A DNA stretch of 32,560 nucleotides, taken from Octopus bimaculoides (lineage: Eukaryota). The stretch lies in NCBI RefSeq assembly GCF_001194135.2, contig NC_068988.1:1077857-1110416 (forward strand), written 5' to 3'. Positions within the stretch are counted from its first letter, which is position 1, and the number at the start of each line of letters is the position of its first letter. Below the pieces are notes generated by a model that saw only the letters and a list, made by a program, of their open reading frames with translations, did not search any database and had not been told where the DNA came from. This document shows, piece after piece, positions 1,586 to 30,684 of this stretch. The position numbers and the translations under genes were made by a program.

Positions 1586-1628
1586 CTCACAGCAAGAAGG
1601 CACCATCCCTAAAGCCAGCCCGGACGTC
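1586..1628 (-). CDS. Peptide gene A, exon 3 (43-nt micro-exon)
   Basis: Acceptor ttttttttctttccacag and donor GAG|GTATAA. In phase 2 it reads (L)TSGLALGMVPSCCE. Length, phase, acceptor and PxCC motif match 24879-24921. Confidence 0.82.
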
Positions 1629-2578
1629 CTGTGGAAAGAAAAAAAAAGGAAGAAATACATATATATACTTATATAGATAGGTTTGGTGATGCAAATACGA
1701 AAATAGAACTAAGAGCATTCGTATATATATAAAATCGTTTATCAAATAAACCATTAAGTGTGGAATAGTAACATGGACTAGTTTTTTGGAAGCAGATTCT
1801 TCTCTTGACCAGTAGGGCCAAAAAGTCAATTTTGAACTATGTTTAGAACAACGTCCACTACACAGTTAAACGAAAGAACTAAAAACTTAACATTTAGTTG
1901 GAATCCATTCTCCTGTCGAGGTTCTGCTCGTGGTTAAGAGTAGTTTTAACTCTTATTTCTAGCAATGATGGTGCTTACTTGCACCCATACTCACTTTACA
2001 GTGACGTTTGTACTTGTGCCTTTTGGCTTTGAACTGCGATCAACCACTTTAATAGTTTATCAGAATGTGTGTTCAAAGTAATTTACAGGAAATTAAAATT
2101 TGATATATATGCACATACATATACACACATATATACATTTGATATATATATACATATATATACACACACAAATTTGATTAATAAAATCATACTCAGTGTT
2201 AGAATTTTATCATTTTGCGCCAGAGTCTGTTAAATAAAATCGTGTTCTAGATTTTGCTTCGTTTAATTCTTCTTCTTATAAACATTATACTGCATACATG
2301 ATACAGTTGTTATGTTTTAAGAGTAAATGCTATTTGCCAACATAATGTGGTTGTCCTGAAAGGGACGATGTTACTGTTGTTTTAGCCCCAAGAAACATCG
2401 TTACTAGCTGGCTATATATTCCACACAATGTTTCATACTAACTATTCCACACACACACACACACACACACACACACATACAGAAACATATACATACAAAT
2501 ATCCTATCCTTTGCTCAACAACTTCAAGAATTTCATATGAGTTATTTTGTAAATTTTTGTATAAATGTGCATACTTAC

Positions 2579-2778
2579 AAACAAAACACATCGAAATCGA
2601 TTATTGTGTAGGGTGAACATTGACAGTTATACCATGCAATAGAACATGTTTTATCTATAGCGCATGCGTCGGCTTTCAGAGTGCACTTTGTAGATGGTAC
2701 TGTCGTCAGGTCGACGGGATTTATCAAGAACAACAACACCGACAACACAATAAACAACATGGATTCTCTTTTGTACAT
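2579..2778 (-). CDS. Peptide gene A, coding part of exon 2 (exon 2792-2579): signal-peptide-like segment plus six Cys
   Basis: Acceptor ttcttctttag at 2793, 14-nt UTR, then ATG 2778. Reads MYKRESMLFIVLSVLLFLINPVDLTTVPSTKCTLKADACAIDKTCSIAWYNCQCSPYTIIDFDVFC, then TT|GTAAGT (phase 2). Clear paralogue at 30086-30296. Confidence 0.88.
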
Positions 2779-2894
2779 TTTCAGTTTCTGTTCTAAAGAA
2801 GAAATGAAACAATATCAATGAATTAAACAAACAAATGAAACATTATAAATACGTCTACATTTAACAGAAATTTGGCTTAAAATTTTGGCACAAG

Positions 2895-3030
2895 AAAGTT
2901 CATGTGAAGGGGTAAGTCGATTACATCGACCCCAGTGCTCAACGACTACTTGTTTTACCGACTCGGAAAGGATGAGAGGTAAAGTCGACTTCGGCGGAAT
3001 TTGAACTCAGAACATAAAGACGGACAAACT
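2895..3030 (-). mobile_element. SINE family B fragment
   Basis: Contains gttctgagttcaaattccgccgaagtcgacttt...catcctttc on the minus strand, as at 16935-17145. A smaller piece lies at 1478-1525. Confidence 0.8.
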
Positions 3031-4050
3031 GTCACGAAGACACACATACATAAACAAACAGACACGCACGCGTATACACACACACACACACACACACACG
3101 CGCGCGCGCGCGCGCACACATATATATACATACATATATATGTACACACATACACACATATACGTATATATGTATGTATATGTATATATATATATANNNN
3201 NNNNNNNNNNNNNNNNNNNNNNNNNNNNNNNNNNNNNNNNNNNNNNNNNNNNNNNNNNNNNNNNNNNNNNNNNNNNNNNNNNNNNNNNNNNNNNNNNNNN
3301 NNNNNNNNNNNNNNNNNNNNNNNNNNNNNNNNNNNNNNNNNNNNNNNNNNNNNNNNNNNNNNNNNNNNNNNNNNNNNNNNNNNNNNNNNNNNNNNNNNNN
3401 NNNNNNNNNNNNNNNNNNNNNNNNNNNNNNNNNNNNNNNNNNNNNNNNNNNNNNNNNNNNNNNNNNNNNNNNNNNNNNNNNNNNNNNNNNNNNNNNNNNN
3501 NNNNNNNNNNNNNNNNNNNNNNNNNNNNNNNNNNNNNNNNNNNNNNNNNNNNNNNNNNNNNNNNNNNNNNNNNNNNNNNNNNNNNNNNNNNNNNNNNNNN
3601 NNNNNNNNNNNNNNNNNNNNNNNNNNNNNNNNNNNNNNNNNNNNNNNNNNNNNNNNNNNNNNNNNNNNNNNNNNNNNNNNNNNNNNNNNNNNNNNNNNNN
3701 NNNNNNNNNNNNNNNNNNNNNNNNNNNNNNNNNNNNNNNNNNNNNNNNNNNNNNNNNNNNNNNNNNNNNNNNNNNNNNNNNNNNNNNNNNNNNNNNNNNN
3801 NNNNNNNNNNNNNNNNNNNNNNNNNNNNNNNNNNNNNNNNNNNNNNNNNNNNNNNNNNNNNNNNNNNNNNNNNNNNNNNNNNNNNNNNNNNNNNNNNNNN
3901 NNNNNNNNNNNNNNNNNNNNNNNNNNNNNNNNNNNNNNNNNNNNNNNNNNNNNNNNNNNNNNNNNNNNNNNNNNNNNNNNNNNNNNNNNNNNNNNNNNNN
4001 NNNNNNNNNNNNNNNNNNNNNNNNNNNNNNNNNNNNNNNNNNNNNNNNNN

Positions 4051-4275
4051 GAAGGAAGGAAGGAAGGAAGGAAGGAAGGAAGGAAGGTAGGAAGGAAGGA
4101 AAGTAAAAACAAAAACGAGAAAGAAAACAAAGGAAAGTAAAGAAAGAAAGAAAGAAAAAAGAAAGAGTAAAAGGAAAAAAGAAAGAAAAGGAAGAAAGAA
4201 AGAAAGAAAGAAAGAAAGAAATAAAGAGAGGAAAGAGAGGAAGGAAGGAAGGAAGGAAGGAAGGAAGGAGGGAAG
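4051..4275. repeat. (GAAG)n / GA-rich simple repeat
   Basis: Visible directly next to an N gap. A similar tract lies at 12120-12350. Confidence 0.9.
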
Positions 4276-28217: not shown

Positions 28218-28457
28218 GGAAAATATTAAAAAATGTAAGCATCTGTAAATTGTGTGCTGGTGCCATGAGAAATGTTTCTATATTGTGACACAGAATATAG
28301 AAAGAAGTGTAAAACTGATAACTATATCATCCAACTGAAATATCTCAGTTACGCAAACGTAAACAGAATTACTATTTATCCTTAAAATACATCGTACATA
28401 TTCAAAGAACCTTCTTGGTTTAGTGGCACGGAACGTTTTTCTGGTATTCTTTTATTC

Positions 28458-29659
28458 TGTAAGGAACGACCGTGTGTACTCAAAAAAAAGGGAGAAATGG
28501 TGACGAATGGAAAAACAGAGGACTCCTTTTATTTAAACGTGTCACACGGTCGAACACAAAATATATATATCAAAGATGATATACATGATATGTTATACTA
28601 CGATAACATAGATGACCAGTAATGAAAGACCACAACCGTATAAGATGAATAACAAAAATATTTATTATGGCGTTAAAGATGTATGTCTGTGTGAGAGTGT
28701 GAATGCGACATATAAGAACATAATCAAAGACAGGCCGTCGTACAAAGAAAAGTGTGTATGTGAGTGATACATGTGTGTGAGTTATTACAGCAGATGGAAA
28801 GAGAGTCAATAACACGTGAGCAATTATACCAGTTATTTAGTACANNNNNNNNNNNNNNNNNNNNNNNNNNNNNNNNNNNNNNNNNNNNNNNNNNNNNNNN
28901 NNNNNNNNNNNNNNNNNNNNNNNNNNNNNNNNNNNNNNNNNNNNNNNNNNNNNNNNNNNNNNNNNNNNNNNNNNNNNNNNNNNNNNNNNNNNNNNNNNNN
29001 NNNNNNNNNNNNNNNNNNNNNNNNNNNNNNNNNNNNNNNNNNNNNNNNNNNNNNNNNNNNNNNNNNNNNNNNNNNNNNNNNNNNNNNNNNNNNNNNNNNN
29101 NNNNNNNNNNNNNNNNNNNNNNNNNNNNNNNNNNNNNNNNNNNNNNNNNNNNNNNNNNNNNNNNNNNNNNNNNNNNNNNNNNNNNNNNNNNNNNNNNNNN
29201 NNNNNNNNNNNNNNNNNNNNNNNNNNNNNNNNNNNNNNNNNNNNNNNNNNNNNNNNNNNNNNNNNNNNNNNNNNNNNNNNNNNNNNNNNNNNNNNNNNNN
29301 NNNNNNNNNNNNNNNNNNNNNNNNNNNNNTGTTGCTGCTGCTGTTGTGTGGTACACGGAACAGATCTCAAAGAGAAACTGGACCGAGACAAATTGTTGGG
29401 TATGAGTTGATCTATTTAAGGTGTTAAGGGGGCTCCAAGACGGTAGCAGAAAAACACTATCACGTGACCTTATTAAGGGCTGTGATTGGTCAGTTTGCGT
29501 TCTGGCGGGAACGGTTCGAAGAAGTTGCCGATTCGAATAATGATCAGTCACGTGATGACATGGTTAATGTTTTCCGCTACGTTCGCGTTTGTTTATATTT
29601 AAATGAGAAGAATGGCGATAGTAGTCTTGTATCTAGTGACGATAGGTAGTTTCACTACA
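28458..29659 (-). mobile_element. Solo LTR (1202 bp including gap) with 4-bp TSD
   Basis: TGTAGTG...CCTTACA termini and TSD ATTC at 28454-28457 and 29660-29663. Homologous to 1-253 and 32300-32560. Confidence 0.85.
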
Positions 29660-29662
29660 ATT

Positions 29663-29870
29663 CTTTTACTTGTTTCAGTCATTTGACTGTGGCCATGCTG
29701 GAGTACCACCCTTTAGTCGAAGAAATCGATCTCTGGACTTATACCCTGTAATCCTGGTTCTTCTTCTATCAGTGTTTTCTGCCGAACAGCTAAGCTACGG
29801 GGACGCAAACACACCAACATCGGTTGTCGAGAGATGGTGGTTGGGGGACAAACACAGACACAAACACACA
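29663..29870 (-). mobile_element. SINE family A 3' half whose tail is interrupted by the solo LTR
   Basis: ccagcatggccacagtcaaatgactgaaacaagtaaaagaat, then the LTR, then gaataaaagaata on the far side. Confidence 0.8.
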
Positions 29871-30085
29871 CACACACACACACACACACACACACACACA
29901 CATACATACATACATACATACATACTGGGGTCGATTCGCTCGACTAAACCCCTTGAATGCGGTGCCCCAGCATGACCGCAGCGGAGTAACTGAAGTAATT
30001 AAGATATATAAAAAAGTACGAGAATAAATATATTTGAACAAACTGTTTGAATTCGTATCGCTTTCGATACAATATGTATACGTAC

Positions 30086-30282
30086 ACACAAAATTCGTTT
30101 AAGGACATTGTTTGAGTGGGATTACAGCTGCAGTGATACCATTTCCTGGCGCATTCAGTAACTTTCAAACATTTCGATATTGGTACTGGACATTGAGCGG
30201 ACGGCAACAGTGTGAGTTTCATGGGATTTACCAGGACCAGCGACACCAACAATACAAACAATATGGCTTCTCTCTTATACAT
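30086..30282 (-). CDS. Peptide gene B, coding part of exon 2 (exon 30296-30086): signal-peptide-like segment plus six Cys
   Basis: Acceptor ttcgtttttag at 30297, 14-nt UTR, then ATG 30282. Reads MYKREAILFVLLVSLVLVNPMKLTLLPSAQCPVPISKCLKVTECARKWYHCSCNPTQTMSLNEFC, then GT|GTACGT (phase 2, same position as gene A). Confidence 0.88.
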
Positions 30283-30684
30283 GTTCAGTTTCTGTTCTAA
30301 AAACGAAATGAAACAATATCAACGAATTAAACAGACAAATGAAACATAATCACGTCTACATTTAATTGAAACGTTAAGGTTCACTGTAAATAGCTTCTAA
30401 TTGGTTATTCGACTTGCTAGTTTAGTGGATGTTAGCCATCAATCCATCGCTGGTAGTACACCATCTTTCTTTTCTTCCCTGAGCTCTGCTAATACTTTAC
30501 ATGTACCACGTACTCGCGTTGTTGTTTTTCTTTTGTATTTGTTCTTTTTGGGATTTATTACACACACACACACACATATATATATATATATATGTATATA
30601 TATATATATATATATATATATATACACACACACATATATATAACGTTTGTATAATACATGAAAAGGAGACAACAAAAAGAGACT

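Follow-up and report, generated by a model that had tools for sequence, protein, structure and literature searches.

Does a stretch of 32,560 nucleotides (nt) from Octopus bimaculoides (assembly GCF_001194135.2, contig NC_068988.1, positions 1,077,857 to 1,110,416) code for two related small cysteine-rich peptides, and what kind of peptide would these be? The whole stretch is called the window here, and positions are counted from its first letter. It contains two separate tandem paralogous genes, A and B, both on the minus strand and each encoding a precursor of about 80 amino acids (aa). We consider it probable that they are tandem paralogues of an Octopus-restricted family of secreted four-disulfide peptides that is under diversifying selection.

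The two genes are composed of the following parts.

2579..2792, minus strand: first coding exon of gene A ("exon 2"), with a 14-nt leader, the ATG at 2778, the predicted signal peptide and Cys1 to Cys6

1629..2578, minus strand: intron of gene A, 950 nt, gap-free

1586..1628, minus strand: 43-nt exon of gene A, coding for (L)TSGLALGMVPSCCE with Cys7 and Cys8, followed by GTATAA

30086..30296, minus strand: first coding exon of gene B, with a 14-nt leader, the ATG at 30282, the predicted signal peptide, Cys1 to Cys6 and the phase-2 donor GT/GTACGT

24922..30085, minus strand: intron of gene B (nominal length), containing the gaps 25230-25391 and 28845-29329, a reverse transcriptase (RT) fragment and repeats that resemble short interspersed nuclear elements

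24879..24921, minus strand: 43-nt exon of gene B, coding for (V)IASAVLKSTPLCCA with Cys7 and Cys8, followed by GTAAGA

In gene A, an AG acceptor at 2794-2793 is followed by the leader AACAGAAACTGAAA. The frame then stays open to ...FDVFC, where TT/GTAAGT provides a phase-2 donor two bases past the Cys6 codon. The first coding exon of gene B has the same acceptor and the same leader. The 43-nt exon of gene A is preceded by the acceptor ttctttccacag (1640-1629), and these 12 nt are identical in gene B. Both spliced products have the framework C-x6-C-x5-C-x6-C-x-C-x11-C-x12-CC. The likeness of the two genes is not due to chance, because their first coding exons find each other by tblastn within the window (E = 1e-9 to 3e-15) and because the window has exactly two copies of each of the 12-mers TTCTTTCCACAG and AACAGAAACTGA, all at the predicted sites. 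A third copy was not found in the window, either by tblastn (E up to 100) or by an exact search for the 12-mer motifs.

This gene pair had been proposed in a first-pass annotation. Read on the minus strand, the four exons and their splice sites are at the positions given there, and the spliced translations and the eight-cysteine spacing are as claimed for both genes. The exons had also been numbered, as exon 2 and an internal exon 3; the exons and their borders are correct, but the numbering was an inference only. The hydrophobic N-terminus that had been proposed is signal-like in both genes, having a K/R-containing n-region and 13 hydrophobic residues. The precursor begins with M-Y-K-R-E, and the hydrophobic residues (mean Kyte-Doolittle value 2.8-3.3) are followed by N-P and a polar stretch before Cys1. 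For gene A, the product through the first coding exon equals residues 1-66 of UniProt A0A0L8IEN1. The model behind this entry uses the splice from the first coding exon to the 43-nt exon and ends with ...PSCCED.

None of the 11 runs of N in the window (among them 1212-1233, 15269-15419, 24081-24556, 25230-25391 and 28845-29329) touches any exon. Gene A, with exon 2, intron and exon 3, lies entirely within the gap-free block 1234-3196. The join of the gene B exons rests on scaffolding, because the intron spans two of these gaps (25230-25391 and 28845-29329). Across every gap, the adjoining blocks match a continuous chromosome segment of Octopus vulgaris in order and orientation. The segment used for this comparison has a single run of 100 N, which is far from both genes.

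This O. vulgaris locus (L001, 80 kb, chromosome OX597821.1) and the window are colinear, with 83-94% identity, and the locus contains both orthologues, in the order B then A and 41 kb apart. A third copy was not found in its 80 kb (tblastn, E <= 0.1; exact 12-mer motif search). Nothing that defined the two genes is lost in this second species: the 43-nt exon still has its length and an identical acceptor, and leader, ATG, phase-2 donor and all eight Cys are retained. Since both orthologues are present in O. vulgaris, the duplication is older than the split of the two species. The first coding exon of the gene B orthologue has 64% protein identity, and its 43-nt exon codes for (I)MASVVLKNPPTCCP, with the same length, the same acceptor and the same trailing GTAAGA. 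In the gene A orthologue, the last codon of the 43-nt exon is a TAG stop. The intron of gene B is colinear with its counterpart, which has 4.4 kb. The intron of gene A has 950 nt in O. bimaculoides and 3.9 kb in O. vulgaris. When the two are aligned (1629-2578 against L001 70466-74365), about 1.2 kb and about 2.1 kb are extra in O. vulgaris, and these are presumably insertions.

Between the two species, the part of each gene that encodes the mature peptide has diverged much more than the surrounding DNA. Introns and intergenic DNA on the flanks have kept 89-95% identity, whereas the mature codons, in an ungapped codon alignment, are only 70% (A) and 79% (B) identical. Pooled mismatches amount to 82/321 (25.5%) in the mature coding parts and to 194/2215 (8.8%) in 2.2 kb of flanking DNA, so that the mature parts have diverged 2.9 times as much as the flanks (odds ratio 3.6, Fisher p = 9e-16). 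Non-synonymous divergence is 0.28, compared with 0.088 in the flanks (p = 4e-16). By the Nei-Gojobori method, the ratio of non-synonymous to synonymous divergence (dN/dS) of the mature part is 2.0 for gene A and 1.7 for gene B. The Cys residues are under constraint: when the observed substitutions are placed at random, all Cys and the open frame are kept in only 6e-5 (A) and 1.5e-3 (B) of the trials. The net charge of the mature peptide flips between orthologues (A, from -2 to +5; B, from +3 to -1). The signal peptide has remained conserved, as has a block of 90 nt upstream.

Between the paralogues, identity declines from the upstream block to the mature codons. Genes A and B are about 90% identical over 92 nt that comprise upstream block, leader and first codons (2752-2843 against 30256-30347), 70% identical in the signal codons and about 47% identical in the mature codons. 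Their introns cannot be aligned, save for some 17 nt at the acceptor; past the 43-nt exon, about 25 nt can be aligned. Taken at the level of sequence, a constant regulatory and signal region together with fixed Cys and fast-changing surface residues argues for diversifying selection on a secreted binding surface. What is new here is the comparison of orthologues, which provides direct evidence of such selection.

The family is small and restricted in its distribution. An exhaustive search with a profile hidden Markov model covered 1.84 billion (1.84e9) protein representatives, and a second search with a five-sequence profile covered 5.8 billion (5.8e9) clusters. Only three family proteins were found among the representatives, all from Octopus, and the same three among the clusters.

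P0001, 82 aa: spliced product of gene A plus a final Asp (UniProt A0A0L8IEN1, O. bimaculoides, "Uncharacterized protein")

P0002, 103 aa: contains the orthologue of the first coding exon of gene B (O. vulgaris CAI9727362.1, "hypothetical")

P0003, 67 aa: a third paralogue, which the window does not encode (O. bimaculoides A0A0L8IDK4, automatically named "EGF-like domain-containing protein")

The gene B product of O. bimaculoides is in neither protein collection according to the word-indexed and the five-sequence profile searches, and gene B of this species appears to be unannotated. In Pfam, no family matches A, B or any of the five members at E <= 10. A match of one member to TrbK in the Pfam scan (E = 0.37) was set aside as noise. 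A literature search by accession, by sequence string and by topic returned nothing on the eight-cysteine family. The lineage restriction that had been proposed agrees with three matches in 1.84e9 representatives, all of them from Octopus, and with the absence of a Pfam family. The peptides had also been called unrecognised. This is true of the family but not of gene A, which already has the (uncharacterised) UniProt entry A0A0L8IEN1.

Genes of this type are missed or mis-joined in the public octopus annotation, where gene B is lacking, the third paralogue is truncated and the O. vulgaris model is chimeric. The chimeric model, CAI9727362.1 (L001 10001-70263), combines an exon 18.8 kb upstream with the coding exon of the B orthologue and with a 46-nt exon at 54402-54447. 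It skips the 43-nt exon and takes the first 12 nt of the exon of the A orthologue, which it reads as NRN-stop. The next O. vulgaris model starts at 70424, inside the exon of the A orthologue and in another frame.

The structure of mature B was predicted with AlphaFold2 from a four-sequence alignment (mean predicted local distance difference test score, pLDDT, 80.3; predicted template modelling score 0.58). In the model, helices are predicted at 12-15, 19-26 and 38-49, and strands are limited to two bridges of two residues each. Confidence in this fold is moderate. A Foldseek search of the model against PDB gave no match with E < 8. The predicted helical four-disulfide fold is of structural interest because it has no match in PDB.

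We propose the following explanation. Each locus would yield a precursor of about 80 residues, with a cleavable signal peptide directly before a single peptide of about 53 residues, which would end at the Cys-Cys pair or one to two residues past it. The eight invariant Cys would form four disulfides and hold together a small domain, probably of three helices. The signal peptide and the leader or promoter-proximal region stay constant and the Cys scaffold is fixed, and the surface residues between the Cys are exchanged faster than neutral DNA changes. Change at such a pace is also known from toxins, immune peptides and mating signals. This evolutionary pattern would point to an action outside the cell, on a binding partner that itself keeps changing. 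As to its role, a species-specific chemical signal (a pheromone or a reproductive signal) is our leading candidate, put forward tentatively. A salivary or venom component is conceivable and would come second. An immune effector is unlikely, and the same holds for a role of some other kind. The tissue of expression would tell whether the peptides are used in venom, in immunity or in species recognition.

Several points weigh against this explanation. The selection comparison is between two species, O. bimaculoides and O. vulgaris, and covers five sequences. The comparison of dN with dS alone is borderline (p = 0.06), because there are few synonymous sites (67), and the strong divergence test presumes that the flanking DNA is near neutral. 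Absence from other cephalopods is an absence from annotated proteins, among which small genes are often missed, as gene B was. One of the five AlphaFold2 models of mature B scored 45.8, and the model rests on four sequences; the prediction for full-length A with its signal peptide, from two sequences, is poor (pLDDT 47.5). The spliced products of A and B have no record in assembled public runs, and exact matching of the contigs for P0001 and P0003 gave no record either.

At the 3' end, the GT after the 43-nt exon is either a donor, or this exon is terminal. If it is a donor, the sequence continues as in the UniProt model, in which a single Asp is added from an exon outside the window. If the exon is terminal, gene A ends with CCEV-stop and its O. 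vulgaris orthologue with CC-stop, while both B orthologues read CC(A/P)V-RKR plus a tail without in-frame conservation, and RKR would then be a likely convertase site. In both cases, the mature peptide would stop at the CC pair or directly after it. Three features downstream of the 43-nt exons bear on this choice.

1470..1475, minus strand: AATAAA, 111 nt downstream of the 43-nt exon of gene A (115 nt in O. vulgaris)

24816..24821, minus strand: AATAAA, 58 nt downstream of the 43-nt exon of gene B (57 nt in O. vulgaris)

21563..21589, minus strand: candidate exon 4 of gene B, tttcag/GGTCAG...TGA, coding for GQLWQEKN-stop, from a look at splice sites only

If the 43-nt exon is the last one, the AATAAA at 1470..1475 is a possible polyadenylation signal. 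Exon 4 of gene A as annotated (AG/GAY-stop) was not found in 1..1585, so it must be either outside the window or in the gap 1212-1233. A coding-looking frame downstream of the 43-nt exon of gene A was not found. For gene B, the first-pass annotation had extended the protein by an exon 4 coding for GQLWQEKN. The acceptor of this exon is kept in O. vulgaris, but the frame there reads T-stop, and the proposed extension is not supported.

At the 5' end, three further features are relevant.

2793..2870, minus strand: upstream block of gene A, adjoining the leader and ending in an acceptor-like AG dinucleotide

30297..30371, minus strand: upstream block of gene B, paralogous to 2793-2870

5784..5829, minus strand: candidate non-coding upstream exon of gene A (cccag/.../GTAAGT), orthologue of the 46-nt exon in CAI9727362.1

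The upstream blocks of A and B are about 90% identical, and no alignment is possible for the rest of the introns and the intergenic DNA of the two genes. Upstream of gene A, 3024..2793 has 95% identity to O. vulgaris, and the block is conserved beyond neutral DNA. It carries TATTTATAA 64 nt before the ATG and two copies of TGTTTCATTT. The TATA-like TATTTATAA is found at this distance in three of the four copies (two species, two genes). The block would be a core promoter with a 5' untranslated region or, alternatively, the 3' terminal part of an intron. The O. vulgaris model uses the AG/AACAG junction as an acceptor in both genes, and this junction may be a real acceptor. CAI9727362.1 splices the 46-nt exon onto the acceptor of the first coding exon of the A orthologue; the candidate exon at 5784..5829 is no more conserved than its flanks. 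The TGTTTCATTT pairs and the TGTTTAATT core of the upstream block resemble forkhead and homeobox binding motifs, and these motifs may set the tissue specificity.

The strongest of the alternatives has, in our view, only a small chance of being correct. A and B might be alternative units of one long transcription unit, either with shared 5' exons or by read-through. CAI9727362.1 joins its exon 18.8 kb upstream, the first coding exon of B and the 46-nt exon to the A acceptor, as would be expected for such a unit, and both genes carry an acceptor-like AG in front of AACAGAAACTGAA. This model looks like a prediction artefact, however, because it skips the 43-nt exon and runs into a stop inside the leader of A. 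Moreover, A and B each have an ATG, a signal peptide and an upstream block of their own, with the TATA-like element mentioned above. If they did form a single unit, both peptides would stay as described.

The products might be related to a known family. The closest candidate is attractin, a molluscan water-borne pheromone of 58 residues with three disulfides, whose precursor consists of a signal peptide and one product (PMC3484142). Attractin of Aplysia (PDB 1T50, PF08037) is the only PDB sequence match of the family profile. Cys1 to Cys4 fall on C13, C20, C26 and C33, so that the spacing C-x6-C-x5-C-x6-C is identical. Both are molluscan, and both combine a signal peptide with one product of about 55 residues (PMC3484142). 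Attractin is helical, as is the octopus peptide by prediction, with helices predicted over the aligned stretch. However, the match is not significant (E = 0.28; hhalign probability 1.3%), the Pfam family PF08037 matches none of the five members, and Foldseek did not return 1T50. In place of the IEECKTS motif of attractin, the octopus family has [WL]Y-x-C-x-C; the aligned segments IAWYNCQCS, RKWYHCSCN and KDLYRCKCK have only the Cys in common with it. Attractin has six Cys rather than eight and a different C-terminus that lacks the final CC. Attractins are also conserved enough to act across species, whereas the octopus family diverges fast. A relationship is thus improbable, and the link to attractin is a lead and not a finding.

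Resemblance to EGF-like domains had been noted in the first-pass annotation, and the products could accordingly be divergent EGF-like proteins (growth-factor-like ligands), in which the first six Cys form the 1-3, 2-4, 5-6 knot and the CC pair has been added. EGF domains follow the loose pattern C-x(4-7)-C-x(4-5)-C-x(5-12)-C-x-C-x(8-13)-C. The spacing C-x6-C-x5-C-x6-C-x-C-x11-C, including C4-x-C5, is within this range in all five members, and UniProt has automatically named the third paralogue after this domain. EGF domains also have Gly and aromatic positions after C5, and these are not kept in the octopus family. Neither an EGF model nor any other Pfam model matches the five members at E <= 10, and no EGF chain is among the PDB sequence matches at E <= 10. 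The fold that AlphaFold2 predicts has three helices and hardly any strand rather than the beta-hairpin structure of EGF, and Foldseek returned no EGF structure. Thus, the resemblance extends to the spacing and not to a profile or to the predicted fold, the extra CC pair sets the family apart, and we regard an EGF-like origin as very improbable.

The least probable alternative, that these are decaying or never-functional open reading frames (ORFs), either pseudogenes or prediction artefacts, could invoke the dN/dS near or above 1, which also fits relaxed constraint, and the inconsistent public models (one unspliced, one chimeric, one missing), but is hardly tenable because lost constraint cannot raise divergence to about three times that of the flanks, because eight Cys, ATG, frame, both splice junctions and the 43-nt length are kept in four genes at this threefold neutral rate, and because conservation of the upstream block exceeds that of neutral DNA.

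Two other assignments were rejected. For Ly6/three-finger proteins, there is no match to Pfam UPAR_LY6, and the predicted fold is helical. The first-pass annotation had seen no CxxxxCN ending of the Ly6 type; in the A orthologue of O. vulgaris, a C-x4-C-N ending is impossible, because the stop follows directly after CC. A GDNF/GAS1-like reading has no match in Pfam.

Tandem paralogues of a secreted four-disulfide family thus remain the preferred reading, and counterparts can be found in other molluscs by their mode of evolution. Conotoxins have a conserved signal peptide, an invariant Cys framework, hypervariable residues with dN/dS > 1, and tandem or local duplication. Like the octopus peptides, the conotoxin superfamilies are small, disulfide-rich and molluscan. 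The conotoxin-type pattern is defined by evolution rather than by homology, and the octopus family has it with respect to signal, scaffold and hypervariable residues. Unlike conotoxins, the octopus family has no propeptide, and two exons share the coding of its mature peptide. The two are not similar in sequence, and no Pfam conotoxin model matches. To our knowledge, the framework C-C-C-C-C-C-CC cannot be placed among the conotoxin frameworks. The same evolutionary pattern is described for MgCRP-I of the mussel Mytilus galloprovincialis (PMC4558851). MgCRP-I peptides have six Cys and three disulfides, compared with eight and presumably four in the octopus family. They also form a large family, while the octopus family is tiny, with three paralogues, and homology between the two was not detected.

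For a mollusc, such a family is in principle no surprise. As predators, cephalopods are chemically sophisticated, and contact chemoreception is of great importance to octopuses. Only very few small secreted cephalopod peptides are known, and a description of a cephalopod family of fast-evolving disulfide-rich peptides was not found in the literature. It is possible, and we say this with considerable reserve, that the peptides are Octopus-specific, have four disulfides, three helices and a fold absent from PDB, and serve as species-specific external signals or as salivary toxins under conotoxin-like diversifying selection. If so, they would be the first family of this kind described in cephalopods. 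With two to three genes and a clear orthologue pair, this is a compact and testable case.

The remainder of the window is rich in repeats and fragments of mobile elements.

27804-28217, minus strand: RT fragment (Pfam RVT_1, E = 9e-14), inside the intron of gene B

12385-12773, plus strand: RT fragment (Pfam RVT_1, E = 1e-6), running into the gap at 12774

4667-4888, 7719-7926, 29662-29862 (inverted) and 4969-5022: copies of a short interspersed repeat of about 200 bp, with 75-83% identity among copies

Both RVT_1 fragments are remnants of retrotransposons. The repeat of about 200 bp has many copies in L001, and one of its copies is in the intron of gene B, shortly after the coding exon. At least seven copies of a second repeat (16978-17143) occur in the 80 kb of the O. 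vulgaris locus. Scans of the window for tRNAs and with Rfam were empty. An ORF at 7852-8499 (minus strand) is taken by us to resemble the dimerisation region of hAT-type elements, and another at 23055-23516 (minus strand) the C-terminus of a mariner-type transposase; neither has a Pfam match at E <= 0.01. Microsatellites (TA, TG or CATA) border most gaps of the window and are the probable cause of the breaks in the assembly. An inverted repeat with 91% identity (1-253 and 28458-28715) has one arm at the left edge of the window and the other in the intron of gene B. The two arms are probably copies of a mobile element, separate from the gene duplication.

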